Notes: generated by a model not told the origin, from the sequence alone. DNA of 42,327 bases from Octopus sinensis (GCF_006345805.1 NW_021835243.1:1-42327), one strand, 5' to 3'. Numbered from the stretch's first letter, positions 4,863-35,420 are shown. Translations and numbers: made by a program.

Positions 4863-4919
4863 TATAAAATAATTTTAACCACGCTTCATCGAACATGCGC
4901 AAGTGTACTAGACTGACGT

Positions 4920-5326: not shown

Positions 5327-8300
5327 GGTACTGTTCTATTTCATGAATCATGAAAATAGGCACTAATTTAATTAATGAAAATTTTTTTGAATATTAGAGG
5401 AAAAATTAAATAAATGTACTATGCCGATTTTGTAAATATTATTATAAATTTTTTTAAAAAATATTTGAATTTTTTAATCGTTTGTGTGGATGGACGGTCA
5501 CGTTGAGATGAGAAAATACGCAAAATTGAAGGACTACGAACTCCCTCGCTCTGAGATGGAGTCCGTAGCCTTCCTTCAGGAGGTTGGAATCATTCCAACC
5601 GAAAAGAAATGTGCCGAAAGACATCCGATGACCCTAAAGCGAGATGGTACAACTTGGGTGTGTGATAAAAGCGAGTGTCGAATTTCAAGTTCTGTCCGAA
5701 ACGGTATAAGAGAGTACTTAATTTTTAGGTACGTGGCTCGAAGGCACGACAGTGTCATTACAATCTTGTATTCGGTTTATTTATATGTGGAGCTTCGACA
5801 GACACAGCATTTTATGGTGTCGGCGTCAACTGGAATGGAGTCGCCAAACGATATGTAATTGGTCTCACTCGCTGCGGGAGGTATGTGCTGCATATTTAGC
5901 AAATCGTCCGAAAAACACTGATTGGTATTATATGTCACAGGCCACAACTGTTACTCCGCCAGATATGTTACACTAAAAATTCATATAAATAGAAATAAAA
6001 CTTTTAAAATTAAAAATTAATACAAAGCATAACCTAATTGTTCGCAAAAATATGCTTTTCTGAATAGAAAAAATTTGGACTGAAACATGAATTTTTTCCC
6101 AAAACCAACATACCGTTAAAAATATGAGTTTTAAATTATTTAGCAATCTATTTAATTTTGGCTTATCCATATCTTTTTTTTATTAAATAATTATTCTTTT
6201 TTTTTAATAAAAAAAATTTTAAAAGCCTCTTATTAGTTTAAAACGTTTTCTATCAAGGAATCACAAAAAAGAAGGATCATTCCCAATTTTAATTAAGCGT
6301 GAAACATGTATTTTCTCATACATGTCACCTGTCTCACTTTGTATTGTTACTACAAAATCGTCTTTTGCCACAATTGTGTATTTCACCATCTCTAATCCAT
6401 CATAAAGTGGATATTGTCGTTTGTTAGCGTCATTATCTTGCCTAAATTACATGTTTATACATCCCAAATACCTTAAGATTACTATCTCTCCTACACTAAA
6501 AGTAGCCTCGTCATACTTCCATTTTCTTCTCTGAGCCATTTTATCAGCTGCCAACAGAATATTTACATACGCTTCATTCCTTTCCTCTTCCAAATATTCT
6601 ATGTCATCATTTTGCAATAACAATGATTCTAGTTCCTCCTCTGATGTTTCAATAGGATATTTTATGCCCATAAATAGATTAAATGGGACTTTTTTTGTGG
6701 TGGAATGGACAGTATTGTTATAATCAAAAACAATGTCTTTGATTATATCGCAATAGCGTCCAAAACATTCATCAGAGTAACTTTTAGATGAAATCCATCT
6801 TTTGATACTCTGATTTAGTCTAAAGAATAATGTTATCTTACAACCTTTCCACCTGTCCCTGTACCCAAGGAGCCCTTGGTCGTCCACGGACATGTTTAAT
6901 TTTGTACTTTTCACATAAACGGGCGACATGGTCATTGCAAAATTCTTTACCATTGTCTGTATGCAAGATCAATGGTGGCCCAATATAATAAAAGATGTTC
7001 TGAAATAACGAAGCAATTTCATGAGCTCTTTTGGTAAAAGATAACTCAACTATCGCGAATTTCGAAAAAGAATCGACAATTACAAGAATCTAATCTTTAT
7101 ATAGCCAAAAGTACCCAGTTATAAGAATCATTAATATCTGAATATCTCCTTAGGTCCACTAAATCGGCGATATACCGATCGCGACTCCGCCTTGCAATGA
7201 TCGGCGTAACTGGGGGTTTAGTAGCCAATGATTTTTTTGACTAAAAAATTAATAAAAAAAACTTAAAACCTGGCAAGGAATACATCGTTTTATGACACGA
7301 TTGATCTCTGCACGTGATATTCCGTGGTATAAGCGCGCCAATTTTGAAAACAACCGGTCTCGACCAAAATGATTCAAATTATGTTCAGCCAATTGAAATA
7401 AACATTTATTATGCAAACTTCAATATATTTATCTTTAAGTTCAGCTTCATCGCTGCAGAAAAATCTTAATTTAAGTCCATCTTTAGTGATATATGGAGCT
7501 CCATCCAAAAAATCAAATTTATTTGCTAATTTCAGTAGTCTTGATCTTTGCATCCGCGAAAGCGTCCTGCTGACGAATACGAGCTCAGGATTGCTCTTAA
7601 GTTCCTTAAGTAATTCTAAGTCTTCCTTTGTTACTTGCACTAAACGCTTTTAACGTGTATTTGTAATTTAAAAAAACATCAATATTTTTTAAAAATTTAT
7701 AAGTTTTCTTTGATTTCATAGAAATATACCAAAGGATTCATGTTTTAAGTTTTTTCCAACTTGACAATTTGATGTTGGTGTAACACATCTGGCGGAGTAA
7801 CAGTTGTGGCCGGTGACATTATTTACATTATTAGATTGCATAGGTGGAATTGGAAATGTCGGTAATTGTAATTACTTTATTTTTGTTAATAGGTTATTCA
7901 ACCCCAGATCTAAATGCTCTTGCTTATGTGCACCTTACAGTCAATCACAAGTTTATTGTAATTCATTTATAAATTTGCAGACGAAATTTTGTAAACCCGA
8001 GGACGGGTGCACATACCCAGTGTGTTGAGAGGTTCGTGTAGCAAAAATTATATACAAAAATATAGAATGTGGGGGAACGCAAAATGGCGCAATAAGAGAC
8101 AAAGAGGAACCGCACGCCACTATATGGGTGAATACTTTGCAGGTATTAAATATTCAGATTTAATTTGTAGAATTTTTATGGAGAAGACAAGTGAGCCATT
8201 TGGACAACGCATTCGACGAATTGTTAGACGCAATTGTGCAATTTTACCAACCGAACGTTTCGCTCCGTAGATCTAACTAACCTTTTTCCTAATAATATCT

Positions 8301-8480
8301 TATTTTGACTTTAGAATTTAAAATTTACACCACTAAGTCATTAAGAATTCAAATATTTTTTAAAAAAATTTATAATAATATTTACAAAATCGGCATAGTA
8401 CATTTATTTAATTTTTCCTCTAATATTCAAAAAAATTTTCATTAATTAAATTAGTGCCTATTTTCGTGATTCATGAAATC
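5327..8480 (+). mobile_element. Merlin (IS1016/IS1595-like) DNA transposon, intron-containing and internally deleted
   Basis: About 140-bp TIRs (5338-5478 vs 8340-8479; the right end lacks about 10 terminal nt). 8-bp TSD GACTAACG at 5319-5326 and 8481-8488. Spliced translation gives a zinc ribbon, SVRNGTWLEG, W...LREVC, IGG and TVNHKRNFVNPRTGAHTQCVERMWGNAKWRNKRQRGT..YFAEFLWRR (stop 8278-8280). Confidence 0.9.
5933..7818 (-). mobile_element. Ginger2/TDD-type integrase DNA transposon with 5 micro-introns (CDS about 7640 to 6261)
   Basis: TIR of about 40 bp, TGTCAC[A/C]GGCCACAACTGTTACTCCGCCAGAT[A/G]TGTTACAC, with TG..CA ends. Spliced protein has HHCC (HNLNH..CIPC), IADLVD, TDNG-35-QVER and a C-terminal VGEIVILR..HVSRL segment. 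No RT or LTR. Confidence 0.88.
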
Positions 8481-8620
8481 GACTAACGTAAACTTTGAAG
8501 AAGAAATAAATTCTTTTATTTCAGTAATTTTCACAAAATTGCAAGAATATGAACCTGCAAATATTTATAACGCCGACGAAACAGGAATATTCTACAAAAA
8601 TATTCCATTGCATTCCAAGT
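8481..8620 (+). mobile_element. Continuation of the pogo/Tigger transposase (start of DDE_1 domain)
   Basis: TNVNFEEEINSF...YEPANIYNADETGIFYK follows the second copy of the TSD GACTAACG. Confidence 0.8.
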
Positions 8621-8919
8621 GGATTACTTGTGAAAATCAAACTTAAAAAACAGATATAACGATTGATAATTACGATAAAATTATCACGACGCTTAAAATT
8701 CTGGATCTGTAAGTTCCTGATCGGAGTCTTAACATCGGTGCAAATGCGTTGAAGAACTAATTTGGCTACCTTGGCACGAAGAGGTTTATGTGCAATGCCG
8801 AGATGGTGCTAGACCTCTTCTTCCGTGAAGCCAAGCGAAAACAACCCCCAAGTCCTCCGATACCACGTACGCCCAAGGGCAAGACAGCTTAATCTTAGTT
8901 GGTTAGTTTTCTGGCCTTT

Positions 8920-9309
8920 ATTTTTCTGGTCCAAGTTCCTGATCGGAGTCGAGACACGCTGATTCCAATCATCCAAACTCATGTACAGACCGGATCGATT
9001 ATCTGTACGGATTATTGGCCAGCCTACAATAGAATCGAATTGTTAGGATATTCCGATCATTTAAAAGTCAACCACAGCCGCAATTTTGTTGACCAGAACA
9101 ATCTCTCCACACATACGCAGGGAATCGAGTCAGTGTGGTCTCACGCCAAGAAAAAGCTAAAAAGGATGAATGGAACATCCCGTGTTCTTTTTAATTCTTA
9201 TCTGGCGGAATTTGAATGGCGGTGGAGAAATGATACGTATCCCTGTGGAGGCGGGAATGCATTTATTAAAATGTTAATAACTATTAATTCTCAGTACCCT
9301 TTGTCTTAA
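8920..9309 (+). mobile_element. Second Merlin/ISXO2-family transposase, C-terminal half (no introns)
   Basis: VPDRSRDTLIPIIQTHVQTGSIICTDYW..Y..HLKVNHSRNFVD..HTQGIESVWS..YLAEFEWR. Confidence 0.88.
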
Positions 9310-9589
9310 TAATTCGAGTTTTTCACTGTTTTCATGTTTTACTAAGTTGCGTAAAAAATGTAGTTTTAAAAAATTTAACTTCAATGGAGAAAAATATATT
9401 AATGAAAAGAATTGCTTTAGTTCCCTCACGGGCGAACACATTAGCGGAGGTGACTTGTAGTTGACGTGACGGAGGCACATTAAATTTAGAAAATGAAGAG
9501 GGGGAAATTATTAAAAAAGTACTACAAATTTTTGAAAAGTGACTCACGTCCGCCGTGGCTCACGTCTGGACTGTGACAATATATAAGAT

Positions 9590-9780
9590 TCAAATATCAC
9601 AAAAGTATAAATAAGTAAAAAAGGAGATAAAAAAACAAAATCGAAAAATATCACAAAAAATATAAATAGATATAAGTAAAAAAATAAATTAAAGGAACAA
9701 ACTCGAAAAATATCACAATAAGTATAAATAAGTAAAAAAAAAGGAGATTGAAGGAATAAAATCGAAAAATATGACAAAAA
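9590..9780. repeat. Degenerate A-rich tandem repeat of about 60 bp (about 3 copies)
   Basis: Recurring AAATCGAAAAATATCACAA..GTATAAATAAGTAAAAAA. Confidence 0.7.
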
Positions 9781-10119
9781 TGATGAACTTTCAGATAATT
9801 AAATCATTAAAAGAAAATACATCTTGTATTATTCCTTCTGAATCCAATTAAGATAAAAAATAATGCGTAGCAAATAATTAAGAGAGCACCACAAAGTAAA
9901 TCGACAGCGTGCTCACACGTGGCTTAATCTATTAGATATTAGGTTTACCATTTTAAAATTAAGATAATTAATAATAATTAATGAAAAAAACTTTATTTTT
10001 ATTACAAAACAGTTTTGAATGTCAGTAATTCTCACCTTTAGAGAGAGCAAGGATTCAATAATAACCAGATTATTGAAAAAGATGATTTTAAATCAATTAA
10101 TCTTGGCTATACCAATTGG

Positions 10120-10237
10120 AAACTACTTGCTCGACTTGACTGCTAAATTGGCAGCGAAGAGTGTATGCCCCCGCCTCAGCTCAGAATTTGCTCCTTACCA
10201 ACTCGGGGTGGGGATCTCCAACGGTTGCGAGTCCGAC
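10120..10237 (+). mobile_element. Small internal CRE RT fragment
   Basis: LTAKLAAKSVCPRLSSEFAPYQLGVGISNGCE aligns with LSAKLLCRAIVPCLSSKFLPVQLGVGVPNGCE in the 31.4-kb copy. Confidence 0.8.
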
Positions 10238-10559
10238 ATCGTTAATTTATTTTTTGTATATCAATCCTCCCTGGTGACATAACTACCGAATTAGCAGTTA
10301 TTTTGTTTTTTGCGGTGCAAGTGATTTTAATCTTCATTGCTATTTTGAATTTGGTTGGAGCGATTTATGATTTTATGCTTGAAAAGTGGAATATTTATAT
10401 CATTTAATCTAAAAAAATATTGTTGTCACCACGCATCGGAAAATAAGTGCAAAGTAACATATATTAGCAATAAAGTTTAACTCTGAAAAGAACACGCAAT
10501 TATTAGTTATTCAATTTCCGTTTTTGTAATTTGTAGTATTTTTTTACATCAAACTCATT

Positions 10560-10765
10560 CTCTTAGGGCCCACGTATAATGCACCGATGGGCAGATTCAT
10601 GTCAACACAGAGTCTAGATTCAGGAACTACCTCTTTAACAGGCATCAATAACACGTGCCTTGTCTTGGCTTGCATGCTTTCTAAGGTCTTCCGCAACACC
10701 AGTGTCTCGATGTATGCCTTCACCCTGTCCTAAATTGCATGTCAATAGAGAGCTCTTTGCCTTGC
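10560..10765 (-). mobile_element. R4/Dong-like 3' fragment
   Basis: Minus strand DRVKAYIETLVLRKTLESMQAKTRH matches ERVRTYIQTVVLRKTLESMQAEERH of the 2.9-kb copy. Confidence 0.75.
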
Positions 10766-11256
10766 AGCTTCCAGCCCGGTTTCATCACATGAGGTCTACC
10801 CAAACACATTTTTGGACAATCTCCAGCCGCGTTTATCATCAACCCCTCATATGAGGACCAGTAATAATTCCCGCAGTACTGGAAGCAACATGTCTTGTCA
10901 ATGTGAAATGACTGATCCCATATTGTGGTGTAGGTATCTTCCTCAAGGTGAGACAGTGAGATCTTGCTAGGCTGAATACATTGATCTCTATATAGTTCAA
11001 CATATATGGACTTATTGTCACTAAGATAACATGCCGTTGTGTTACAAACACCACCGTCAAAGACAGTGCCTGTTGGCAGGTATGTCATAGGGTCAATGAT
11101 ATAATGGGTGACGGAGACAGATAGGATATCATTAATTGAGATTTTAGACCATTTCTTCTCATCTATCATCGGAAGGAGAATGTTTCTTAACTCAACGGTA
11201 GAAAGGAAAGAGAGAAATATTGCAGAAGCAATTAAAGTGTTAACACTTAATCTCAT
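10720..11256 (-). CDS. Orphan putative secreted Cys-rich protein; C-terminus captured by a retroelement fragment
   Basis: 178-aa open frame, hydrophobic N-terminal signal-like segment, 8 Cys including CCFQYC and DCPKMC. The last about 13 codons overlap the R4/Dong fragment. No family recognised. Confidence 0.5.
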   Translation of the reverse strand: MRLSVNTLIASAIFLSFLSTVELRNILLPMIDEKKWSKISINDILSVSVTHYIIDPMTYLPTGTVFDGGVCNTTACYLSDNKSIYVELYRDQCIQPSKISLSHLEEDTYTTIWDQSFHIDKTCCFQYCGNYYWSSYEGLMINAAGDCPKMCLGRPHVMKPGWKLQGKELSIDMQFRTG

Positions 11257-11949
11257 TTTATATGTTTTTCTTGAAACTGCAGTACAAAGACTCAGTACAG
11301 TTGTTGTGAGAATCCAGTTGCATGGTCAAGGAAAAGAATGAAAAAATGGTCAAGAATAATCAAAATCTTTCATCAATCAAAGCTTGTTCCAAAGTTCAAA
11401 GACGAACAGCGGTAAAGCCACAGCCCTTTTGCGAACCCATCAAAGCTGAATATCCCACAGAACCTTTCGAATGCTTGAATAAACTTTAAAAGAAAAGCAT
11501 CCTAGCGTTTAAAGTAAAGAAGGAGAAAGCGCACTTGGAGTCTTTATATTACAGGATATTATTTTCAGATCTTAATTGGAGGATAAGATGCTTCCCGCTT
11601 TGAACAAGAATAACTAAACTAGCAGGTAAATCAAATAATCCTAGGTATGGAGTCATTCCTTATAACATTATCGGTATATCAAGTGGACAGGTACATACAA
11701 GAAAGAAGCTTGTTATGAGTCTCCACAAATTGCAACGTTTACACATGTTGGGAGGGTAGGGAGTTAGGAATTTCTTGATTCGAAAATTTGAGCTAGTGAT
11801 TGCTAAGTTTCTGAGTTAGATAAAAAGGCTTGTGAAGTCAGGATGACGAGCGGGATCAGCTTGGTGTGTTTTGCTTCCGAATTTGGAAATTACTTAAAGA
11901 GACTCTTGTTTGGCTCCTAATCTTAATACACTGAACGTGCTCAGAGCCT

Positions 11950-12339
11950 ATCCGGTTTATGGAAAAACGGTTCTCATTCGGTATTGGCGTATATTTACCG
12001 ACGATACTTTTAACCGTCCATTTCCAACGCCTGCGGATAAGGGCACCGCAGCTATCGTGGTCCAACAGGAGGCGAATCGAGGATGTCCAACAAAGGGTCC
12101 ACAGATTAACCGAACGTTGGTCGCACGATAACAAACGCTCGGATCTGGGTCCTCTGGAGGACCTGATGTAGCAGAATTTCAGATTGTTTGCGAATGCTGC
12201 GACAAATGCGGCCAGCCCCCCGGTGGGATCTTGTGTGGGCTCGTGGAAAGATCACCGAGCAAGGATACGTTGAGTGCATCTGGATCACGTGATATTTGTT
12301 CGGTTTTTACCGTGGTCTTGGTGTTTTAATAATAATAAT
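11950..12339 (+). mobile_element. LINE 3' fragment with (TAA)n tail
   Basis: PQLSWSNRRRIEDVQQRVHRLT resembles the post-RT region of LINEs. 3' motif shared with 40893-40927. TAA repeats at 12327-12339. Confidence 0.55.
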
Positions 12340-12360
12340 TTAAACTTATAATTTTTGAAA

Positions 12361-12420
12361 GGCTCCTTGTGATCGTCTGATTAAATCGTTCAACAATTCC
12401 CTGACTCTTGGGATTGTTCT
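12361..12420 (-). mobile_element. Integrase fragment (Gypsy/Ginger-like)
   Basis: NPKSQGIVERFNQTITR, the catalytic-E motif. Confidence 0.5.
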
Positions 12421-12517
12421 TCCATGTACTTCTTGAACACAAAACTCTGCATAGATGATTAAAGACCTCAAACTCAGTGTCAGTGGACATTATTTAAATG
12501 AACTGTTCGAACATTTA

Positions 12518-14121
12518 CAGTGGGTCAAATTAGTCTTGGGACACTTGTATATTTTTAATAAAATTTTCTTTTCTTAAACATACCTGTTTTTATCTCATTT
12601 TTTCCAAAGGCTAAAAAATTAAGCAAAGTTTTTTACATAATAAAACATTTAAAAATAATCCAAGGAAAATTTTATTTGAAAAAATTTTGACATTTTAAAC
12701 AAACAGTCACAAAATCAAATGCTAATTAGTCTTGGGACAAATTACTTAATACTTTGTAAAGTATCCGTTATTCTCCAAAACTGCATTTAAGCGATTTTTA
12801 TAATTGTTAACAAGCTTTTTACAAGTTTCAACAGGAATTTTATTCCATTCTTCAAAACAAAATGATTTTAATTCCGCAATATTTTTTGGATTATGCGCCC
12901 ATACTTTGGCTTTTAATTCCTTCCAAAGGTTTTCAATCGGATTAAGATCTGGGGACTGACTTGGCCATTCAAGGGTATCAATCAAATGTTCTTCTAGCCA
13001 TTTTTGAGTTTTTTTTGCGCTGTGCTTTGGATCATTGTCTTGTTGAAATGTCCAATTTTCTGCAATACCACATTTCTCAATTGACGAAAATAGATTTTTT
13101 TCCAAAATATCACAGTATTTAGAAGCATTCAATATTCCGTCAATTACATGAAGTTCTCCAACGCCCCAAGAAGAAAAACACCCCCATAGCATAATACTGC
13201 CACCTCCATGTTTAACTGTTGGTATGGTATTTTTTGGACGATATTCATCCTTCGATTTACGCCACACGTAGCTTGTATAATTGTGTCCAAAAATTTCTAT
13301 CTTTGTTTCATCCGACCAAATAATATTATTTAGAAAGTCGTCGTCTTTAAGTAAAATTTTTTTGGCATATTTTAGCCGTGCATGGACGTGTTTCTTAGTA
13401 AGCAGCGGAACTTTACGTGGACGACATTTATGGAACCCTTCTTTTCTTAGGGCATTTGTAACAGTCTGTGAGCATACTGGTGTTCCTATCTCACCCAAGT
13501 AAGTAGAGAGTTGTTTACGAGATAATCTCGGATTATCAAGCACTTTTCGTCTAATTATGGAAATTGATCGAGATGATATTTTTTTGGTTGTCCTGATCTT
13601 GGCTTATTTTTGGTAGTTTTAAATAATTTTCATTTATTGATAATGTTCCATACTGTACTCTTCGGAATATGAACACTTTCGGAAATTTTTCGGATTGAGT
13701 TTCCTGCATTATATTCAAGAAGTATAAGTTTTTTTATTTCTTCTGAATGTTCCTTTCGCTTAAGCATGTACAAAATATTAATCGCAAATAATGCTAATAA
13801 TCATTTAAATATAGGAATTAATCCGGAATTAGTATAATTTCGTTGATCGATATGTAGATCAATTCAATTATTTTATCAAAAAGTAAATAAATAACTAACT
13901 GTCCCAAGACTAATTGGAACATGATATTCTATCTGTTGGAAATAAATGTGAAATTTTTCTATAAATAAAACGAATTTTGTAATTTTTTTATGATCTAGGA
14001 TGTAAAGAAAACTAGGAGCACTATTATACTATTGGAAAAAATTAAATAAAAACAGCTATGTTAACGAAAATAAAATTTTATTAAAAATAAACAAGTGTCC
14101 CAAGACTAATTTGACCCACTG
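12518..14121 (-). mobile_element. Tc1-family DD34E transposon with IR/DR-type long TIRs
   Basis: TA TSDs (12516-17, 14122-23). 30-bp perfect outer TIR CAGTGGGTCAAATTAGTCTTGGGACACTTG. WSDETK / QQDNDPKH / 34 residues / NPIENLW. The N-terminus from ATG 13767 has a stop and frameshifts. Confidence 0.95.
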
Positions 14122-14252
14122 TATTCAAATTTGCAAACTAAGCAACGATTTAAATTATTAATGCTATTCAATAAATTCATCTTTATAACAAAAAAAAATT
14201 ATGTTAAAAAAAATTTATATAATAATAAATTTTGTGATATTACATTAATTTT

Positions 14253-17200
14253 ATGTTAAACACATTTTTTATTTTTAAATTTCAAATCGTTCTAATCATA
14301 ATTCACCAAGTACATCCCCTGACACAAATAAAATGCCCATTGCCAAATTCAGATGAAAGCAGGGAGCATAAAGTCTGCTGGGGCGAGTCCGTAGTTTGTC
14401 TTGCTGTGTTTGATTCGATGAAAAGACCCGTATATTTGCTCTAATCAAACATAGAAACATGAAGAATGCGCTGACAATGTCAATTGTGCCACGTTTTTCA
14501 CAGATAAAATACACGTGATCAACAAATGTGGCAGTTTCAAAACAAGTGAGGAGACCATCATGTGTTGCTGTAGCGAAGACTGTCCTGTGCAATGGCCTCT
14601 CAATACCACCAAAATTATAAATAACACAGAAATCATCAAACGTGAGAACAACTCAATGAAACTTTTTGTAATCATTTTTGCAATTTTAAGTATCTTTACA
14701 ATTATTGGTGTCTATTTAAATCACAAATGGGATGAGCCACGTAGAAACACTCAAGACTATAAGAATATATTACGAAAATCAAGAAAACTGTATTTAATTA
14801 AACCAAAACAATTAACTAATCTGAAAGTATTATGTCGCGACCCACGCTGGCGACCATCCCACGCTGGCGACCATCAGTTTGACAGGTTATGACCTTCAGT
14901 TTGACAGGTGATTAGTTATTTAATTTAAACCGGAAAAAATTCATTTTAAGAAATGGTTTAGCGTCATTTTAGAAAAAAAATTATGGTTTCTCTCAAAATA
15001 TGTTAGCATGAAAAAAGCGACTCAATTTATCATTATTAATGATCGGTATATTTGCGACTCCTAACTCATAGTCTTTATAATCATAATAATATTATGTATA
15101 TTTACGCTACAGTTCCTATTAAATGAAAATGGAATTTTACATGGGAAATTTGGCAATCATGACGTGGCTATTAAAAGATACGCGAACAGCGATTTATTTC
15201 ACAATGAGCTGACAATATTTGGGTATCTTTCCATTTCAAAGGACCACCGGCAACACTGCGTAGGCTGTGTTGGTTTTACAGAATCTCCTCAATTACTATT
15301 GACAGAGTATCACAGCCAAGCATCACTGTCCTGGCACATACATAATGTAGCAACTGGATTTTATTCGTAGAAAAATTCAAATCCTGGAAACCTACTTGGT
15401 TGATAGCATGTGCCGCAACTTTGGTTGATAGCATGTGCCGCAACCTAAAAAAGAACGATTGTGAGACCCGAAAGATTTACGGCCTATAACATGCATGTCG
15501 ACACTTATAAGTTAGTTACCAAGTGTGTTAATGGAAAACTGTCTGAGTTCATGGATGTATTTGGCTTAATTTCCGAAAATCAACTTGGTACGAGGAGACA
15601 GTGTCAGGGTGCTAAAGAACAGGCCCTTATTAACCAATGCCTAAATAAAGAGTATGGAATGGGGCTATACTTGCATGGATTGATGTCAAGAAGGCTTTCG
15701 ATTCTGTTGACCACGACTTTCTATTTCATGTGTTGGAGTGCTCTGGGATACCTTTATGGATTGTTAACTTTGTGAAAAGGACTGTACGAATGTGGACTGT
15801 AAAGCTCCATGTTGACGGAAGGAGAATTGGTTCTGTAAAGTTGAGCCGAGGGATTTTACAAGGAGACTCGTTATCTCCGCAACTGTTGTTATGGTGATGG
15901 ACCCACTAAGCAGGATTCTTAATGCCATGTTTCCAAGGTTCAGATTAATCAACAGGACCAAAATAGTTGACCTATTCTACTAATCATTTGTTCTTCATTG
16001 ACGACCTAAAGATTCGCTCTAAAGAAGATGTAGTAATAAAATGATGGAAGCTGTTGATGGATTCTTTAAATGTTGGCTTGGAGATGAATTCAGAAAAGTC
16101 TGCATCAAATGTTCAAATCTTTATCTTGTTGTGAGACTTTGGAAGGAGTCAAAGGATATCGCTATTGGGTGTACTTGAAGATGCAGGAAGTAATGTTCTT
16201 AAGAGTAAAGTAATGGATTCTATCCTTGGAAATGTAAAGGAAGGATAACCATGCTTTCAAAGACGAAATTAAATGCGGTAAATTTATTCCACGCTATATA
16301 AATGAACATGCCATTTCTCTATATAATTATTACATTGGGCATTAATATTGAACCTCATGAATTTGATTGTATTGACCGTCAAATACGACAACTTCTTACG
16401 ACTCTCAGACTCCATCTCAAACCTGCAAATAAAGAGAGGTTATATTTAAATCGGAAATCTCTTGGGAGAGGACTTGCTTCAGTCTCTTTCAGAAGTGAAC
16501 TGATACTTTTCCAGTTCATGAAAAGTTTAGAAAGACAGTCGACAGTATGCTTACGGAGATCGGGAATCCTGCGTGTGATACAAATAAATAAATGGCATAT
16601 GGCCACAATTGCAGGATTTCTCGCCTCCAAGTATGCAATCTCGACATGGAGAATTTGGGTGTTGAATTTATCAAAGATGCTCAAAGAAATATTTGCTTAA
16701 GAACATCAATTGTAAAATGCTACATTCGGTTCTATTCAAAGCATGGACGAACAAAATGTTGATCTACACATCCTCAGAGTGGTTATCTAAAGGAAATAAT
16801 GGTCCACGGAGTGAAGCATTGTATACTGTCTCTTGCAGGATAGGAATTTGTTTTCACATCCATGGGATCTTTATGCAGTCACTGCAAAAAATGCAAGAAA
16901 ACAGTTGATCATTTGGCTACGCAGTGTGGGAAGATGTTAAACAGTGATTATCTGCGGAGACACAATGAAGTTGTGAAGTGCATTCACCTTCATTTGTGTC
17001 GAACCTACGGTATTAAGAGAGGAAGCAAATTAAAGACTCATTCTGTTCAGTCCATATTATCGACGCAGAATGTTGAAATCAGAGTCGATATGTCAATCAT
17101 GACGGAAACTAAAGTTCAATCCAACAAACCAGATATCTTCGTGTATGACAAAACCAAACAAGAGATAACCTTAATGAAGTTGGCATCACGTCACAAGATC

Positions 17201-18412
17201 GCCTCAAACAAGTCGAAATCGAGAAATTTCGTAAATATGATCTGCTCGCAAACGAACTTTCGATACTTTATGGCAAAGGTAAAGATTATCCCGGTTGTCT
17301 TGACCTGGGACGGTGTGGTTCGAGATATTTCAAAAACTATATGGACAAATTATCGATCGAAAAAGCCCAAGAACTTATATTCAATTGTCGTTTTAAAAAG
17401 GACTCTAGAAAGCATGGTAGTTGAACACAGACATGGAGTGAGAGTATCTACCGAAGAATACGCCTCTGCTGTTACCAGCTTGCAGAAGTGGCATGCTGCC
17501 GTGACACGCCGGTGATGAAGATGTGAGACAAATAGAAAATCTATCTGACTGGGAGATGGAGAGTGAGAAGGAACTGGTTGCAAGGTCTTCTCCTAAAGGA
17601 GAAAGATTCCAATAAGCGGACTGAGAATCTAAATTAAATAGTCTAGCTTAAGTTAAATTGTTTCGATAACAAAAATTATGTATATTTACGCTACAGTCCT
17701 ATTAAATGAAAATGGAATTTTACATGGGAAATTTGGCAATCATGACGTGGCTATTAAAAGATACGCGAACAGCGATTTATTTCACAATGAGCTGACAATA
17801 TTTGGGTATCTTCCATTTCAAAGGACCACCGGCAACACTGCGTAGGCTGTGTTGGTTTTACAGAATCTCCTCAATTACTATTGACAGAGTATCACAGCCA
17901 AGCATCACTGTCCTGGCACATACATAATGTAGCAAACTGGATTTTATTCGTAGAAAAATTCAAATCCTGGAAACCTACTTTGGTTGATAGCATGTGCCGC
18001 AACTTCTGTGGCTTATATTCATTCGCGTTCGATAGTTCACAGAGACATAAAACCTGACAACTTTCTGGTATCAGATGACTGCAAGAATGTCGTTCTCTGT
18101 GACTTTGAATTTGCCCATTGCTTCAAACTACCTCAGGAGAGTCGTCTTTGTCATTCAAAAGTGGGATCCCCTGCATACATGGCGCCCGAGTTGTGGGAAG
18201 GGAATATAAACTATCGACTGGATAGCTACATACTCGTCGATATCTACGCTTTTGGGTGTATGATCAAGGAGGCGTTGGAGGCAAATACCAGTTGGAATTA
18301 CAGACAGATTATTGAACAGTGCCGGGATGATTGTCTCATTCATGATGTTCATTTCAGGCTCTCCTCTGCTGATATCATTGCTAAAATATTTATTGGTTTA
18401 TGTGGAGAATAA
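14253..18412 (+). CDS. TGF-beta/activin type II-like receptor Ser/Thr kinase (TKL), micro-intron-containing, split by insertions
   Basis: After removing the 25-nt intron 14430-14454: signal peptide, 10-Cys ectodomain ending CCCSEDC, TM (LFVIIFAILSIFTIIGVYL), no GS box. Kinase motifs VAIK, HRDIKPDN, and KVGSPAYMAPELWEGNINYRLDSYILVDIYAFG resembling the ACVR2 segment [32 protein letters not shown]. Confidence 0.78.
14836..15089. mobile_element. 254-bp unclassified insertion within a receptor intron
   Basis: 8-bp direct repeat TATTATGT at 14828-14835 and 15090-15097. Internal short duplications (CCCACGCTGGCGACCATC x2, TCAGTTTGACAGGT x2). No TIR seen. Confidence 0.55.
15091..18005. repeat. 331-bp direct repeat (15091-15421 and 17675-18005) flanking the retroelement
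   Basis: By manual alignment the copies differ only by four single-base indels in homopolymer runs. Confidence 0.95.
15446..17674 (+). mobile_element. 5'-truncated R4/Dong-like RLE non-LTR retrotransposon
   Basis: ENQLG..GAKEQALIN, AWIDVKKAFDSV, RGILQGDSLSP and FFIDDLK (RT); C..C....DH...C and RRHNEVV (CCHC); NKPDIFVYDK (RLE); short A tail at 17671-17675. Confidence 0.9.
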
Positions 18413-18679
18413 TATATCACCGTTTTACTCTATAATGTAGAGACCTTGTTCTTCATTAAGGATATTTTGGACTTCAAAAAAGCAAGCAGGCATAATTCAT
18501 TCGTCAACAAAAAATGATTTAAAATCAATTATTCCTTTTTTGAAGATAGAATATAATAGTTTTTATTTGTTCAAGAAAAACCACTAAAATATTTTTATAA
18601 TTTTAGAATATTTTATTATTTTTTAAATGATTAATTAACCTCTTTTAATATAATAATTTAGTTTATTTTCCATACTCCC

Positions 18680-19600: not shown

Positions 19601-19769
19601 AAAAAAGATATCTTGTAAAACAACTGCGAGAGAAGCTATTATTAACAATTCACCCAAAACATGGGTAGCATTATTTTTAGCAACGATTCGGCAATTTTGT
19701 AGGATGCAAGTAACCCATCTATGAAATAGGTTAAAAGTAATACTTTTTCCTGCAAGAACATGATGAGTG

Positions 19770-20040: not shown

Positions 20041-20044
20041 GAAT

Positions 20045-20702: not shown

Positions 20703-22079
20703 TAATTTAATTGAAAAATCGGTTTTTAATTATAAAATATAAATAAGAAAAGTCATTTTTATGCGAAAAAATTACTTGACTGTTTCAGTGGAGGATGGCG
20801 ATACAATTCTTTCCCAAAGCCACGATGATTTACGTGGCTCACTTATACTATTAGTAGTTCATTTCTAAAATCAATGAGGAAGGCCGTGTTGAGATCCCAC
20901 GCCTGAAGTTTCGATTAGGACTTGAAATCTATATAGTATAGTTTAAATCAATCTTATATACAAAAATTATAATATTTCAAACTGAAAGACCCCTGGCCTT
21001 TAAGAATGACACAACCAGATCATCAGGTAACTCGTTTGCTATCAGCAGGTGCAGCCACTGGGGAATCATAATTGCTGATATAACTTATAATTCAAACGCG
21101 TGACGCTAAAACCAAACATATTCCCCTTTGGAAGGGAAAGGTCGTCATTCTGTGTGCTCTTCTCCCGTCTACTGCGGATTCCAGTTAAGTGTGGAATCCA
21201 GAATTACGGAGAGACCGGTGGATGATCTGATTTAGTTTTGGATGTCGTAAAAGCTTTTAATTCCGTGATGACATGTAAGGGAGTCATTGCTGTACCACCC
21301 ATCGGCTGTTTATTGTAATCAGAAAGAACATTCTCAATCATTTCTTAGAGGACCGACAAGAAGTACGCCCCAAGTCAACTAGGGTGGTCAGACAGATGCT
21401 TCCAAAGAGTGAGTTGTCTCTATGTCTGCATTAAAATAGATATTTAGAATAATATTATCTAAATCTATCATATGTCTTTAAGACTTAGCTCTTTGGAACA
21501 GAAATTGTCGGTTTTATTGGAATTGAAAACAAGGAAAGCTCTTTATTGACACCTCTTAATAAGCTTTATATTCAAATATCATCTAATTTATACTTAAAAC
21601 CAGAAATTGTGGCCACATGTGTGTTTTTTAACATCCGAAAATACCTGCTTTTCTGATCAGACAAAAAAGCGAAATAGAATGCATTCCCCTAAATTAAAAT
21701 TAGGCATCAAGAGAAAAAAATAGCATAAAAATGAATGAAAAAATAAAAATGCTCATTTTTAATATTATTTTCGTATTAACAAATTTTGTTTTATAAATAC
21801 CGAAATCTCCTTAATTGATACTCAGATTTCAAAGAGAATATTAAAATTGATAGCCTTCCTTAACAAAAATATTAAATAAATATTTTCAAAAAGAGGAATA
21901 ATCATTTTTGTTTTAGAAAAGACTCGAGTATCAATGCGTCAATACTTCTTAGGTAAATCGGACAGGAGACGAATTTGCTAACCAGCAAGCAAGACATTCC
22001 TTATGAAATGTGTGGAAGTAAGGGAGATGTCTTATAATGTCGTCGTTTTGGTAATCGCACAGACAAATGACACTACTGA

Positions 22080-22340
22080 ATGGACATAAATGAAGAACTG
22101 AGGACTGAAGTGATGGAACTAAGCGTCACGGCCTGTGAGAATTTCTTGACAAATAATGAAGCAAGCATATATTATTAATGATGTTGATTTGTCAAAGAAA
22201 CATTGGACAAAAAATTCGGGACAGGATAGCACGTGGTCATCTGGGAAAGTTTCGGGTTCGATTTAATGCGAGAAGCCTCAACGTTGCTTTACATGTGCTT
22301 TGCGGGCTTTCTGGGAATACTCTCCTGGAAGTGTTCTTAA
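22080..22340 (+). pseudogene. DNAL4: Dynein axonemal light chain 4-like relic
   Basis: DINEELRTEVMELSVTACENFLTNNE..KETLDKKFGTG*HVVIWESFGF..LLYMCFAG..WKCS* matches the DNAL4 pattern. TAG replaces the conserved Trp codon. Confidence 0.8.
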
Positions 22341-23399
22341 TCTTACCTGATTGCTAAAATTAATAATACAAGGTTACTCTCATTCTGGAATTTCCTATTT
22401 CATTTTTTGAAAGAATAATTGAAGTCTCGAAATGAACATTTTTCCTTGAATAAGAAAAGTGCTCAACTCAACAAATATTCTGCCATCTTTATCAAAGATC
22501 GCTGCAGATTATAATTAAGAGTGAAATCCAACAGTTCGGAAACACCCGCGGATGATCTCGTTTAGTTGTGGAAGATATTATTAGAGAAAATTTATTTTTA
22601 TCGTCACGAATTGACAAGGAAAGTACTAAATAAATGAATGGTATGTAGAAATTTCAGGGCTTTACTTCACCCGTTTTTTGTTTTGGATCTATTCAAAAAA
22701 TTTATTTTGTGTTAAATTTAGTCGATTTATATTTCTAAACCCTTGCCGATTTGAGTCTAATTTTTGTTTTGAAGACAAAATACATTGAAAAATAAATTTT
22801 CAGCAAACCACGATTAAAGAAGCATTCCTATTAAACCTATTTTGTTTATAAACCATTCCAAATAATGTAATTTCAACGCCCAAACAGAATGACTTGTTAC
22901 TTTTCCGTGAAGGGAAATCTTTTGTTTGAAATGTGTCATGCTTAGACTCTTTATCAAAATGCCTTTGCTTTCGTCAGCGACTGGGAGATATGTCAGTTGA
23001 AAAGGAATAGAAGTACGTCCCTCTCTTGAACAATGTGGAAATCATCCAACTTGGGTTTGAGAAAAGAGCTGTCACTGGTGAGAAAGCAGAGGTATTTTTG
23101 AAGGAGGTCGAAAACATTACTTCCAAACGCACATTTGAGAGGAGAATGACCGTACGACTGTTCCAGATAATCTCAATCACGAGCCCGAAAAGAAACAAAT
23201 TGGCTATTCGCCATTCTAAACTGGTAAAATATATTTGATCGAAATTAAATTATTAGCGATGGGTGTTGATTTATTATACTTTACATTTCTGTAGTAAGAA
23301 TAAGGCAATAAAATTTTTTTATAAAATGAATGTGAGAATTGCATTTTTTGAATCTAGTTTACTTACTTTAGGCCTAAGAGTCAATCCACTCCAAAAGCA

Positions 23400-23740
23400 G
23401 TCGGCCTTTTTGGAACGACGGCAGGCGTCCCGACAGGATAAAGACCTTTCCTTTTTTGGAAGGCAGGTCCCTATGACTTTTTTTGGCGACGATGCTACCC
23501 AAGACTTGGAGCAACTTGTCCTCCGCCAGTACTCAGATCGAAGAGGACAAAATACCTGTGTATTCTAACCCTTGTCTTCGAAACCTCAGGAATCGTCGAC
23601 AAAACCGCGACACAACTCCTCACTGACATTGATAGGAGAATCTCCTTGAAAACAAACGACGGAAGGGAGAGAAGCTGACTCTTTTAGCGAATCTTGGTTG
23701 CTGAGCTCCACAGAAACTGTCATTCAATACACAAGTCGGT
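23400..23740 (+). mobile_element. Highly degraded CRE 3' fragment
   Basis: DGRRPDR.KTFP, LVFETSG and ..RILVA remnants. Confidence 0.6.
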
Positions 23741-25039
23741 GTCGTTGAGCGAACCTTCAAGCCTTCGACTTCTCTTTTAGCTACTTATCCTAGCCTGCAT
23801 CTAACTTTGTTTTTTATATAAATTTGCGCACTTGGCACTTGGTTTTAATTATCTTATGCAGCGACCTGGATGGGAAACACACAGTCGGCGGATAGAGAGG
23901 AAAAATTTTGCTTTCGCAATTGACTTTTTAACAATTCTGAACAATCTATCGAGGAACACAAGGACTCCACTCAACGTGACTGATAAGACTATATCACCTG
24001 ATGTAACCCTATGCTCTTAATCCCTTCATTGACTATGAACTGGTCAGTCCTCTATGAAACGAGAAGCAACCACAAAATCAGATGCAAATAGCTAAGAGAA
24101 TAGTCGAGAAGCTCCGCGGTGAAAATGAAAAAGGGAAGCTTTCACCAAGAAAATTCCTGTTCCATACAATTATAATGCGGCAAACTGGTCATGGTTCCAG
24201 GAGATCTTGAATTCTAAATTAAAGAATTGCAATCTGAACAACTTTAGCTTTCTCAACAAAGTCATCGGCTTCTTTACGAAGACTATTTTGGAAGCAAGAG
24301 CAATGGCTATATCCAATCGCCAACCTCATGCTGCCGACCTGACCAAGGAAATAAATCCAACCATTGAACAAGGAATTGAAGACTAGTGAATACAGATACA
24401 TTTGTTTGAAATGAAATCGGATCCTTACAGCCGTGAACCGAAATCGTTCAACAGCAGAAGTATGGAAAGCAATTCGGCACGTGGCCAACGTAACAACAAA
24501 GCATATTCCTTTCAATATCATTATGGGAATCAAGAGCATTAATGCACCAATTGATGTAAAAATGGAAGCTCTTTAACCAGTTATTAGAGAAGATGCTGAG
24601 GGAGAAATTCAATTTTTGGAGGATTGCAACTATTCTCTTAGCTACTTGCATCTAATATTGTTTCTGATTTAAAAAAATTGTTGGAAATAAAGTAACTGAT
24701 AATGAAAATACTACGAACAATTTGTTATCAAAATACGATAAAATAACGAAAGCAGCAGAAAAAATGAAAAACAAGCAAAAATGGAAATTCGACCAAAATG
24801 ACATTGAGGTTGTGTATAACGTGTTATTATACGGATTAAGGTCAGGGATAAACTTGTATTTAATAATTCTTTATTTTTGAAACTATTATTGATTAGAAAC
24901 CTATGCCAGAGGCAAATAGCTGGGTAATCTAATATCTGATATTAATCTAATTGGTCCTGGGTTTAATTCCCAGGGGCTGCCTGTGCCAAAAGCTCCGATT
25001 AGGTTTGAAAACTGACACCGTCATGACATCTAATCACAC

Positions 25040-31274: not shown

Positions 31275-33385
31275 AGTCAATTGCTACAGCTCTTTAAATT
31301 GATTAAGCATATTTTTGCCGCTTCATCTCCGGTTCCCTCCCCGATTTTGCTCGTTATATTTTCTTTTCCGCCAACCTTACTGCCCTCGGGAAAAAGGACA
31401 ACGGCGTGAGGCCCATCGCCGTGGGCAATATTTTCCGGAGGCTCTCCGCTAAACTTCTGTGTCGAGCCATTGTTCCCTGCTTGTCCTCGAAGTTTCTGCC
31501 TGTCCAACTCGGGGTCGGCGTTCCTAACGGCTGCGAAGCTGCTGTCCACTCAATTCGTGACTTAACTGAATCATTGAGGAGTTTATTATGGTCAAATTGG
31601 ACGTTTCCAACGCATTCAATTCCATCAGGCGGGACCACCTTCTGGAGTGCTGTCGTGAATTAGTCCCTTTCGCCTATCCCCTTGTGCATCTCTCTTATGC
31701 TTGCTCAAGTATCCTTATGTTCAACGATATACCTATTTATTCGGCCACCGGGGTCCAGCAGGGAGATCCCCTGGGTCCTGTCCTTTTTGCCTTGGGCGTT
31801 AACAGTATCGCTCACTTTGTTCGATCCCCAGTTAACATATGGTATCTGGATGACGCAACCATTTCCGGTCCCCCCGATGCTGTTTTTGACGACCTTCGTG
31901 TTATCCTCCCTTCCCTCTCGGACATCGGCCTATCTATAAACGCCGATAAATCCAAAATCGTGAACATTGCCTTAAATCCGAGTGACTTCACTGCTTCAAT
32001 TTCCACGTGCCGAGGCATTCTCTCAGACGTCCGGATTACGGACAAATCAAATCTTACGATCCTCGGTGCCCCCATGGGGCCTTCTGCCCTCGAATGCTCA
32101 CTCGCTGGAAAAATTTCACACTTATCCAAAATGATCGACAAGCTTAAAGTCATCGAGCCTCATGTGGCTTTTTTCCTCCTCCGAAACCACTTTTCCGTCC
32201 CTAAGATCCTTTACACCCTAAGATGTGCACCCTGCTTTCAAAGAGGCGACCTTCTTTCCGACCTTGACAATATCCTCAGCCTCGGTACGAGCTCTCTTTG
32301 CAATCTGGCTTTCGACGATCCAGGCTGGACTCAGGCATCCCTGCCTGTGCGCTGGGGCGGCCTTGGCTTGAGATCCTATTCCGATCTTGCCCTCCCGCAT
32401 TCCTATCCGCTCATCACGCTTCTCGTACTCTCTCAGACATCGTTCTTAGAAACCTCCCCGAACGGAAATTGTCCGAAGTTTACTCTGCAGCCCGTGGTCG
32501 GTGGGAGGCTCGGTTTGGTTCGAAGCTGCCCAACTCTCAATCTGTACAGCGTCAATGGGACGAAATCTCTTGTCAGGCAATCTTCGAAGGCCTGCTTCCT
32601 GTCTCCAATCAACACCGTGTCGCTTGCCTCCGTGCAGGTCGCTGTGAAGGCAGCGGTGTCTGGTTAAAGGCTCTCCCTCTCCCTTCCATCGGGAACCTGT
32701 TGGACAAGGAATGCCTAAGAATTGCAATCTCCCTCCGTGTCGGGCTGAAAATCTGCCAGACGCACAAATGCCGTTGTGGGGGAACTGTTGACGAGTACGG
32801 TTTGCATCCCCTCGCTTGCCGGCGGAGTGCAGGTTGTGCCCCCCGTCACAGTGAACTCAACTCAGTCATACAGAGAGCCCTCGCTTCAGCAGGCATCCCG
32901 TCAATCCTTGAACCTGTTGGATTGGATAGAGGGGATGGCAAACGCCCTGACGGCATGTCCACCTTCCCCTACGAGCAGGGGAAATCCCTTATTTGGGATT
33001 CTACCTGCTCGGACACGTTCTCGCTGGGAAATCTCGCTCTGTCCGCCGCCAATCCTGGGCACGCTTCCAGCCAGGCCGAGGAGCGAAAGATTCTCAAGTA
33101 CGGCCACCTCTCCAACTCGCTGCTCTTTACTCCAATTGCCGTGGAGTCCTCCGGGATCTTCGGTCCCAAGACACTCCGCTTCCTTCGCTCGCTCGGTCGA
33201 CGGATTTCAAGGACTAGTCACGATCCAAGAGAGTATTCTTGGCTCCTGGAACGTCTGTCGATTGCTGTGATCCGAGGGAACGGCTTCGCCATTCGCGAGG
33301 CTGGTCGGGTGTCTCGTGAGGCCTTTAATTAACTTAGCTATCTTTAATTTCTTTCTTGCTTTCAGAACATAAAAAAAAATAAAAA
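31275..33385 (+). mobile_element. Largest CRE-clade copy (RT plus RLE, frameshifted)
   Basis: RPIAVG, KLDVSNAFNS, GVQQGDPLGP, WYLDD, LP.R.GGLG, CCHC, RPDG and PIAVESSG; A-rich tail at about 33371-33385. Confidence 0.92.
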
Positions 33386-33439
33386 ATTTTGGACAAATAA
33401 TCCCATTTGTATTGATTGGTTACGACATGTGAATAATGC

Positions 33440-33650: not shown

Positions 33651-34059
33651 GGCAAAACACTGGCACTTTATTATTATTATTATTAGAACCAAGATCACCG
33701 TCCAAAACATAAAACTAATTAATCAGGTGATCCCGGCTTCTCTGAGGAGGGTCCTCAACTTTGCCCGGTGCTCCTCCTTTGTCCCGGCACAATTTCTGTG
33801 AGGGCGCGGTGGTGGTGTTTTAGGCCCTGTAGCCCCGAGGTTTCTTTTCTGGCACATTTTGAATTTCTTTTTTAAATTATTAAAATATGATAGGATATTA
33901 ATTCTTTTATTTAATTTTAACACTTTGTTTTATTTAAATAGTATTATAATAATTTTTAATAAGGTTAACCCTCCTACAGTTTATTACGCTACACGTTACA
34001 TTATTAAATGTCAGTTCTTAAGCATACTGTTATTAAAAAATCAAAGCAAGCTAAATCAA

Positions 34060-34280
34060 ATGGCAGAACATTTCAAAATTCATGGATTAAAGAATATGGA
34101 TTGCTGAACACAGGTTAATATTTTATTTTTAGGAGACAAAGCTTTATGTGTGTTGTGCTCCGGCCAAATTGCTTGCCGAATATCTTCTATAAAACGCCAT
34201 TTTAGAACTATTCACAAATCATTATCTGAGAAAACTAAGGATGAACAAAGAGAAACAATTGCATTTCAGTTAAAAAAACT
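34060..34280 (+). mobile_element. hAT (SPIN/GTF2IRD2-like) N-terminal fragment with a 19-nt intron
   Basis: Removing 34114-34132 gives FQNSWIKEYGLLNTGDKALCVLC..CRISSIKRHFRTIH. Confidence 0.7.
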
Positions 34281-34303
34281 CTTAACAATCAGAATAACTC
34301 AGA

Positions 34304-34419
34304 ACAGAAATAAATCCATCAACGATCAGGAAATTAGGAGTACGCTAAGCGTGTTTAGACAAACAAGAATGCCTATAGCGTACTCCTAATTTCCGGATCG
34401 TTGATGGATTTATTTCTGT
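34304..34419. repeat. Near-perfect inverted repeat: 44-bp arms (43/44) and a 28-nt spacer
   Basis: 34304-34347 vs 34376-34419. Confidence 0.95.
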
Positions 34420-35017
34420 AGTCGAATATTTATCATCTCGAGAGGAACGGAAGACTAGGGAAGGTTTATTTGGCAAATTTTCCGACAATTGCCTCATTTT
34501 AATATTATCGAATATTTAATGATTGCCTTGTGCCTGATGAGAATTTGTTAGTTTCTTTATGTCATCTTCACTATTTAAATCTCAAATCTCTTTTATTCAC
34601 AATTTGTAATTTATTTCTTTTTTGGTCAAAATATTGGAGACTGCACTAAATACCCTTTCAACTATATGTTCATGCAGCAGGAAATGGAACGCTGATGGAA
34701 TTTCGAGCACTATTATTACAAAATCTGTTAGAATATTCTATGACAAATCTAACTCGTGAGAAAATACGGAATTTTTACAGAAATGCAGAAAAAATCATTG
34801 CAAATTGTTCGATTGGGATTCCACAATACTGTAAAACTTTTTGGCCGAGAACATTTTTGGCCCTTGAAAATATCTTGATCATTATCCGACATTTAATTTT
34901 ATATATTCGATTTTTATCGGTATTTATCCTATTAGATTAGTTTTTTATTTATAAATGTTATCATGGCAAACCTTAATTTCTAGCGTGATATTTAGCATGA
35001 ATGATTATTTTGTTGCA

Positions 35018-35420
35018 ATGGCTTCTTACAAGGGTTTTGTAAAAGATTGCGTTGAATATCAAATTTTAAAAAATGCTTTACATGATAAATCTCCCGAAAA
35101 TCTTCCAAGGCACCGAAAATATAGACTTATAAAGAAAATGGAGAATTTCACCATTATCAATGACAGGTACTGTAAATTTGTAATAAATTTACAGACTTTA
35201 TCTTAAATCTAGTGATCCCAAGTTAGTCATATCCCTCGATGATGAAACCGAAATGGAGCTTGTGGCGAAATCATTACATGAGTTTTCACACGGAGGAGTA
35301 ATAAAATTGAATATGAATGTCGACAAAGATATTTCAGTCAAGAATGACATTATCAGAAAATTTATTCGAAATTGTGAAGTTTGCAAATTTTCGCGACTTT
35401 TAAAAGTTGACCAGACTAAA
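35018..35420 (+). mobile_element. Second Ginger2-like integrase N-terminus with a 28-nt intron
   Basis: Removing 35167-35194 gives ..IINDRLYLK..LHEFSHGG..RNCEVC (HHCC). Confidence 0.65.

Follow-up and report, generated by a model that had tools for sequence, protein, structure and literature searches.

Contig VCDQ01007817.1 of the Octopus sinensis assembly GCA_006345805.1 was analysed at its whole length (42,327 bp, 37% G+C; hereafter the window) and carries transposase genes of the Merlin, Ginger2 and hAT superfamilies that are interrupted by very short segments with splice-site ends. We consider it probable that these segments are genuine U2-type spliceosomal introns, and that the transposons carrying them resided in a dicyemid whose DNA was co-assembled with that of the octopus. 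Twelve such segments had been proposed in a first-pass annotation made from the DNA alone, and all 12 were present at the coordinates and on the strands claimed; 11 have GT..AG ends and one (7390-7418, minus strand) has GT..TG. The interruptions, found in three superfamilies as had been stated, are intron-like, non-coding and bounded by splice sites. Their lengths ranged from 19 to 34 nt (median 28.5, n = 12), and their A+T content was 80%, compared with 60% in the flanking exons. Because each strand of the window has about 40 stretches of 19–34 nt with GT..AG ends per kb, the GT..AG pattern alone is no evidence of an intron, and tests based on homology were used instead.

For each junction we enumerated all in-frame, stop-free excisions with both ends within ±15 nt, which gave 160–310 candidates per junction, and scored every candidate against a hidden Markov model (HMM) made from homologues only. 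At nine junctions (Ginger2 introns 2–5, Merlin introns 1, 3, 4 and 5, and hAT intron 1) the claimed excision had the top score or was at most 2 bits off the top. Just 1–5 of the enumerated candidates per junction (about 0.4–2%) had GT..AG ends, and the product of the rough per-junction chance values gives a joint chance of about 1e-13 for the nine junctions. The proposal that excision restores conserved motifs was borne out for 10 of the 12 segments, which regained colinearity with homologous proteins by alignment or enumeration (Ginger2 intron 1 is included by its length, without an AG). The alignments with Ginger2, Merlin and hAT homologues were gap-free across these 10 junctions, and all retrieved relatives were uninterrupted at these intron positions. 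The best identities found in the protein collections were 44–45% for Ginger2 and 52–56% for Merlin (in a collection clustered at 90%), and 54% for hAT, which was compared only with representatives of 50%-identity clusters. Neither spliced transcripts of the Ginger2, Merlin and hAT genes nor further genomic copies of them gave a near-identical match in these collections, in which a dicyemid transcriptome is probably not represented, as the spliced form of a kinase gene of the window, described below, was missing as well.

In the Ginger2 element, five excisions turned a stop-riddled region into a single open reading frame (ORF) of 416 aa with matches to rve (52 bits) and Integrase_H2C2 (30 bits). 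Aligned with 14 homologues, this product showed no gap at any of the five junctions, and invariant residues flanked them on both sides. H80, H84, C113, C116 and residues of the D/D/E region were invariant in the alignment, H80 and H84 lying just after junction 1. At this junction the removal of exactly 29 nt was required and no GT..AG pair was present; in a dead copy, the TG is more simply read as a mutated acceptor. The best named matches were KRAB-A domain-containing protein 2-like sequences (E 1e-66 to 1e-71), and Gypsy/Tf2 polyproteins matched only at E 1e-6 to 1e-8, so that by similarity only the element would group with Ginger2/KRBA2 and not with Ginger1 or the Gypsy integrases. Ginger2 elements have been described as having TGTNR termini and a 4-bp target-site duplication (TSD) (PMC2836005), with an AT-rich target, RTATAY. 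The terminal inverted repeats (TIRs) found here were about 45 nt long (5933-5976 and 7775-7818; published range about 45–300 bp) and ended in TGTCA...TGACA, which fits this consensus. The flanks, TATA and TTAT, were not identical; the TSD of an intronless Ginger2 relative, described below, was likewise not clean. No ATG in the element aligned with the N-termini of the homologues. As an upstream start exon we tried the mini-exon ATGAATCCTTTG, which is in frame when followed by an intron of about 83 nt; it has no homology support and is not claimed.

Similar results were obtained for the Merlin element that surrounds Ginger2, referred to as Merlin-1. Its TIRs of 140 nt (5335-5474 and 8343-8482) were 98% complementary, and an 8-bp direct repeat, GACTAACG, at 5319-5326 and 8481-8488 is a candidate for the 8–9-bp TSD of Merlin elements, the left copy lying 8 nt outside the detected TIR arm. 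Ginger2 with its putative TSD (5933-7822) interrupts the Merlin-1 exons between 5932 and 7823. Cutting out Ginger2 plus 4 bp preserves the Merlin frame, which indicates insertion into coding sequence and agrees with the 4-bp TSD described for Ginger2; an extra intron at the insertion site was also tried and was rejected, as no GT..AG combination there preserves the frame. The spliced Merlin-1 product of 250 aa scored 230 bits with an HMM built from 11 Merlin homologues, and DDE_Tnp_IS1595 matched its C-terminal part only (27.7 bits, cutoff 27). The product was gap-free across introns 1, 3, 4 and 5 when compared with these 11 homologues and with the intronless second Merlin copy, Merlin-2, located 600 bp downstream. 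At intron 3 the claimed segment was the sole GT..AG among 266 candidates, at most 2 bits off the best, and the restored VNHK/RNFV was colinear with the homologues and with Merlin-2. The catalytic core has lost about 95 aa between KIGGxxxIVE and GYxxxEL, and Merlin-1 is a non-autonomous derivative without a complete catalytic core. The remaining segment, 7862-7892, falls exactly at the junction of this internal deletion and could have been formed from parts of two earlier introns.

The third superfamily is represented by an N-terminal hAT fragment, in which zf-C2H2_12 scored 23 bits, below its cutoff, and phmmer gave an E of 1.6e-17; its full-length homologues bear DUF4371 and Dimer_Tnp_hAT. 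Across the single intron of this fragment the junction YGLLNT/GDKALCVLC was gap-free in comparison with 16 homologues. With 19 nt, this intron is at the extreme low end of the dicyemid length distribution. In a second Ginger-type fragment, the segment 35167-35194 was the sole GT..AG among 254 candidates, and its excision brought two separate homology blocks together in a single HMM alignment (32.5 bits, compared with 21.8 + 3.0 bits). The N-terminal introns of the two Ginger lineages were at different positions. Intron placement was also tried in a Ginger-like fragment at 24493-24829 and was given up, its decay being too advanced.

Table 1. Features of the window (a slash in a peptide marks the exon junction; rank refers to the enumerated excisions; ORF, open reading frame; TIR, terminal inverted repeat; TSD, target-site duplication)
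Feature	Position	Strand	Length and ends	Phase	Remarks
Merlin-1 element, non-autonomous	~5327-8480	+			140-nt TIRs; core deletion; Ginger2 nested inside
Merlin-1 exons	5490-5703, 5729-5932, 7823-7861, 7893-7950, 7981-8031, 8066-8142, 8171-8277	+			stop 8278-8280
Merlin-1 intron 1	5704-5728	+	25 nt, GT..AG	1	rank 1/248; VRN/GTW gap-free
Merlin-1 putative intron 2	7862-7892	+	31 nt, GT..AG		84% A+T; rank 106/310
Merlin-1 intron 3	7951-7980	+	30 nt, GT..AG	2	holds in-frame stop
Merlin-1 intron 4	8032-8065	+	34 nt, GT..AG	2	rank 1/237; VER/MWG colinear
Merlin-1 intron 5	8143-8170	+	28 nt, GT..AG	1	at most 0.7 bits off best; YFA/EFLWR colinear
Ginger2 element	5933-7818	-	1,886 bp		complete; nested in Merlin-1 coding sequence
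Ginger2 transposase coding region	6264-7649	-			416 aa after removal of five segments
Ginger2 intron 1	7390-7418	-	29 nt, GT..TG	0	3 aa before first zinc-finger His
Ginger2 intron 2	7241-7269	-	29 nt, GT..AG	0	sole GT..AG of 163; 0.1 bit off best
Ginger2 intron 3	7090-7114	-	25 nt, GT..AG	0	rank 1; sole GT..AG of 179
Ginger2 intron 4	6820-6844	-	25 nt, GT..AG	2	rank 1/218; inside invariant GQVER/LNQ
Ginger2 intron 5	6442-6471	-	30 nt, GT..AG	2	at most 1.5 bits off best
hAT transposase N-terminal fragment	34008-34386	+			zinc-finger region only
hAT intron	34114-34132	+	19 nt, GT..AG	1	rank 1/198
Second Ginger-type N-terminal fragment	34955-35423	+			H2C2 region
Second-Ginger putative intron	35167-35194	+	28 nt, GT..AG	2	length-variable linker; rank 42
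Reference host intron, kinase	17929-17953	+	25 nt, GT..AG		duplicate 15347-15370, 24 nt
Merlin-2 C-terminal ORF	8899-9306	+			intronless comparison copy
Tc1	12518-14121	-			intronless comparison copy; 92-nt TIRs, TA TSD, one in-frame TGA, one frameshift

Two transposons of the window had been described as free of such introns, and this was confirmed. The Tc1 was colinear and free of introns, and a full-length, uninterrupted Merlin-2 was found at about 3270-4215 of a sister region (VCDQ01012173.1:4602-17612, referred to as L003) that belongs to a contig of 204 kb in the same assembly.

The match in size between the segments and host-gene introns, which had also been claimed, was upheld by the sole cellular-type gene of the window, a receptor Ser/Thr kinase (14455-18409), and by published data. 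The kinase contains an intron of 25 nt (24 nt in a duplicate), and with this intron removed it gave a single contiguous Pkinase match of 83 bits, compared with 41 bits for a RefSeq model that reads through it. A Pfam scan of window ORFs of at least 70 aa detected transposable-element domains (RVT_1, Exo_endo_phos_2, DDE_3, hAT, Pif1-like) and the kinase, and no further cellular gene that could serve as an intron reference. Among 5.8 billion proteins the kinase had one relative above 33% identity, an O. sinensis model located on a further small contig of that assembly; no orthologue in other cephalopods or molluscs was found in that set. Animal introns below 30 nt are known only in dicyemids and myxobolid myxozoans (PMC13644364); those of dicyemids have a median length of 27 nt (PMC6543705) and splice signals reduced to GTa...AG (PMC13644364, PMC6543705). 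The dicyemid Dicyema japonicum, which inhabits the renal sacs of O. sinensis, was sequenced from that host and has a genome with 36.7% G+C and 49% repeats (PMC6736024). From the 25-nt intron of the kinase, its lack of a cephalopod orthologue and the role of O. sinensis as host of D. japonicum, we infer that the contig most likely represents dicyemid DNA that was co-assembled into the octopus genome, with D. japonicum or a close relative as the most likely source species. The contamination probably also affects at least one more contig, VCDQ01012173.1 (204 kb). No prior report of introns in dicyemid transposable elements, or of dicyemid contamination of the O. sinensis assembly, was found in the literature searched.

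If the transposons are native to a dicyemid, the presence of introns of this kind has a straightforward explanation. Being mobilized as DNA, DNA transposons would retain the introns of their genes, and as their transposase mRNAs would rely on the host spliceosome, these introns would be expected to follow host rules, that is, bare GT..AG ends and about 20–35 nt. That the segments are spliced is probable, given that they interrupt otherwise colinear coding sequence at exactly the length that homology requires, have GT..AG ends and a high A+T content, and equal the neighbouring kinase intron in size. The copies in the window are dead relics: Merlin-1 lacks its core and is split by Ginger2, Ginger2 has no aligned start and has a TG acceptor, and only N-terminal fragments remain of hAT and the second Ginger. 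Their introns would record the gene structure of master copies and would not amount to a working regulatory device at the locus.

Several observations weigh against the spliceosomal interpretation. The borders of two of the 12 segments (Merlin 7862-7892 and second-Ginger 35167-35194) are not constrained by homology, and one of the 12 (Ginger2 7390-7418) is without an AG acceptor. All intron-bearing copies in the window are defective, so that the existence of a functional transposase with introns cannot be proved from any of them. A second hAT copy on the minus strand (40231-38990), which comprises the DDE region and Dimer_Tnp_hAT and has stops and frameshifts, contains a 95-nt stretch (40034-39940) without counterpart in homologues; no single or double GT..AG solution for this stretch was found, and the copy was treated as decayed and left uncounted.

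We next considered what else could account for the segments. The first-pass annotation had suggested that they act as a splicing-level switch, in which regulated intron retention would limit transposase production as intron 3 of the Drosophila P element does. Retention of any single one of the 12 segments would cause a frameshift or a stop 1–51 codons downstream, and several of the retained forms would keep just the N-terminal DNA-binding part, which by itself is the classic form of a transposition repressor in P-element biology. Truncation upon retention holds for almost any short intron and is therefore non-specific, no conserved regulatory motifs and no intact copy are present at the locus, and nothing in the sequence indicates that retention is regulated. 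This part of the earlier proposal found no support, and we regard a regulatory role as unlikely. The likeness to the P element is that of a transposase-gene intron whose retention truncates the protein; for the P element tissue-specific, regulated retention has been demonstrated, whereas here it is pure conjecture.

A different origin of the window was also weighed. The contig was deposited in the O. sinensis assembly, its sister is 98–99% identical, as two haplotypes of one animal would be, and host–parasite pairs are a known route of transposon transfer. The DNA could accordingly be true octopus DNA into which the transposons, and perhaps the kinase, were horizontally transferred from a dicyemid, leaving the micro-introns as unspliceable fossils. 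The window and its 204-kb sister contig are both small and share a receptor kinase that has the same micro-intron and no cephalopod orthologue, and several transposon families stand side by side with recent insertion polymorphisms, which resembles a native community of elements and not a single transfer. We find this origin quite unlikely and retain that of dicyemid introns in co-assembled dicyemid DNA.

It is very unlikely that the segments are ordinary small insertions in decaying pseudogenes with GT..AG ends by coincidence. All copies are indeed defective, GT..AG stretches are as common as stated above and one segment ends in TG, but the excision demanded by homology coincided with a GT..AG pair at nine junctions, a joint outcome of very low chance, and the segments share a uniform size class and a 20-point excess of A+T. 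The other lesions seen in the window, in Tc1 and the kinase, are 1-nt indels or single stops and not insertions of 25–30 nt. Removal at the DNA level, like that of ciliate internal eliminated sequences, is extremely improbable: some DNA excision exists in the group, since the formation of extrachromosomal circular DNA under developmental control has been reported for dicyemids and the abundance of such circles in Dicyema is discussed by Zverkov et al. (PMC6543705), but the reported circles are hundreds of bp and not 19–34 nt, the ends are GT..AG and not TA..TA or a repeat-flanked excision signature, and in size and ends alike the segments match dicyemid introns established from cDNA in the literature.

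The comparison with relatives bears on how the introns of these probable dicyemid transposons came about. A Ginger2-like gene in the octopus assembly (P0009, 42% identical) has 1,194 nt for 397 aa. It lies on a 1.29-Mb contig (VCDQ01000492.1:426607-433800), where this intronless gene was observed beside a Merlin-like fragment. A complete, TIR-bounded Ginger2 (TGTCAC...GTGACA) from a Logan assembly, the relative with the unclean TSD mentioned above (L005), has an uninterrupted ORF of 413 aa. A spider Merlin gene is intronless, with 879 nt for 292 aa, and microsporidian and metagenomic homologues were uninterrupted too. Because every retrieved relative is intronless, and because Ginger and Merlin lineages differ in the presence or position of introns in the same genome, the pattern favours acquisition of introns in particular transposon lineages over inheritance. 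The protein collections are biased to uninterrupted ORFs, and intron-containing relatives would be under-represented in them; this weakens the case for gain, which we hold to be plausible but tentative, and is a further point against our interpretation. Of the long residence with intron shrinkage or gain suggested in the first-pass annotation, it is therefore gain that the intronless relatives and lineage differences favour, subject to this database bias. That the introns arose de novo inside the transposons after the families had entered the dicyemid lineage is a tentative extension, on balance doubtful. The single-exon relatives would fit it, as would the differing positions in the two Ginger lineages, the presence of four to five introns in Merlin-1 and none in Merlin-2, and their absence from the recently mobile Tc1.

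That genes of DNA transposons can contain introns is well known, for example from Ginger1, P and Ac. For splicing, an element living in a dicyemid depends on the spliceosome of that host, and introns of host size in its gene are thus predictable; micro-introns in transposable elements follow from two known facts, the existence of transposon introns and that of dicyemid micro-introns. The study of Ogino from 2010 is said to be among the reports of ultra-short dicyemid introns. The segments resemble these introns in length class (median 27 nt, two thirds below 30 nt), in their GT(a)...AG ends and in their high density within genes. The dicyemid intron reports (Lu 2019, PMC6736024; Zverkov 2019, PMC6543705; a 2026 MBE paper, PMC13644364) concern cellular genes, and in the papers searched the repeats, which make up 49% of the genome, were masked or summarised without a description of transposon gene structure. 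Ginger1 is likewise an integrase-like cut-and-paste element, with a transposase ORF split by 1–4 GT-AG introns, and one published Ginger1 intron is GT-TG (PMC2836005), like Ginger2 intron 1 here. In contrast to Ginger1, the element of the window is of the Ginger2 type (KRBA2-like, TGTCA termini, AT-rich target) and has five introns of 25–30 nt; Bao, Kapitonov & Jurka 2010 (PMC2836005) gave intron numbers for Ginger1 and none for Ginger2. Merlin-1 shares DDE_Tnp_IS1595, an N-terminal zinc-finger region and long TIRs with animal Merlin/IS1016-IS1595-like elements, and its C-terminal core is 52–56% identical to Merlins of the arthropod type. Unlike the retrieved Merlins, which are single-exon (Merlin-2 and the spider copy included), it has five micro-introns, four of them verified and one putative, and has lost its core.

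The window as a whole consists nearly entirely of transposable elements, among them several fragments of the reverse transcriptase and endonuclease of long interspersed nuclear elements (LINEs), Tc1, the two Merlins, the Ginger types, hAT fragments and a Pif1-like helicase fragment. The last is an ORF at 4256-4747 (plus strand) with weak matches to the Pif1 2B domain and to a helicase C-terminal domain, and is probably a fragment of a Helitron helicase. Between 31500 and 33400 the G+C content is 50%, compared with 37% overall, which coincides with two overlapping LINE reverse transcriptase ORFs (31570-32664 and 32268-33329). Both are long and uninterrupted, as would be expected of retroelements, since these are unable to retain introns. 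At 8500-8640 (plus strand), immediately beyond the right-hand TIR of Merlin-1, inspection by eye found a peptide, ...EYEPANIYNADETGIFYKNIP..., in which we see a likeness to the pogo/Tigger transposase motif DDE_1. Scanning the window for Rfam families and for tRNAs gave no matches.

Positions 8920-24094 of the window were 98–99% identical to 3835-13011 of the sister region L003. Four insertions of the window were absent from L003, at 9943-11792, 12518-14121 (Tc1), 14834-15086 (about 250 bp) and 15421-17675 (a LINE); the first and third were left unclassified, and L003 has a perfect TA empty site at the position of Tc1. The absence of these insertions from L003 indicates that transposable elements were recently moving in the source genome, and the differences between the two sequences are either insertion polymorphisms or those of recent paralogues. 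A kinase segment of about 335 bp that includes the micro-intron is duplicated around the LINE (15087-15421 and 17675-18010); a small number of 1-nt indels distinguishes the duplicates, in which the intron measures 24 nt and 25 nt, and the second copy is frameshifted. Either an assembly artefact or a target duplication of unusual length could account for this arrangement. In RefSeq the kinase copy of L003 is represented by a single-exon model, "activin receptor type-2A-like [Octopus sinensis]" (P0200, L003 6001-7011), which reads through the 25-nt intron into a wrong frame that a 1-nt difference in a run of A (AAAA against AAA) keeps open; the model is without the HRD motif of the catalytic loop. 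Single-base indels break otherwise intact ORFs in Tc1 (13600-13760), in the kinase (17800-17815) and in Merlin-2 of L003 (about 3900), at least two of them in homopolymer runs. Rather than true mutations they may be consensus errors of long reads in a low-coverage contaminant; in that case, some of the "dead" copies may really be intact.

The occurrence of probable parasite contigs with "Octopus sinensis" protein names in a reference assembly matters for comparative work. Annotation pipelines miss introns of 19–34 nt, so that transposases in such genomes look more broken than they are, and the RefSeq model that read straight through the neighbouring kinase intron is an example of a missed micro-intron. 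If the segments are introns, as we consider probable, the miniaturisation of dicyemid introns would extend from cellular genes to mobile elements. Copies of transposable elements are numerous and datable, and the rates at which introns arise or become shorter could be addressed with them. Should the tentative de novo gain be true, the DNA transposons of dicyemids would hold a natural archive of introns gained recently, at the shortest length that a metazoan spliceosome can handle, in contrast to a genome that is otherwise described as conservative in its intron positions.

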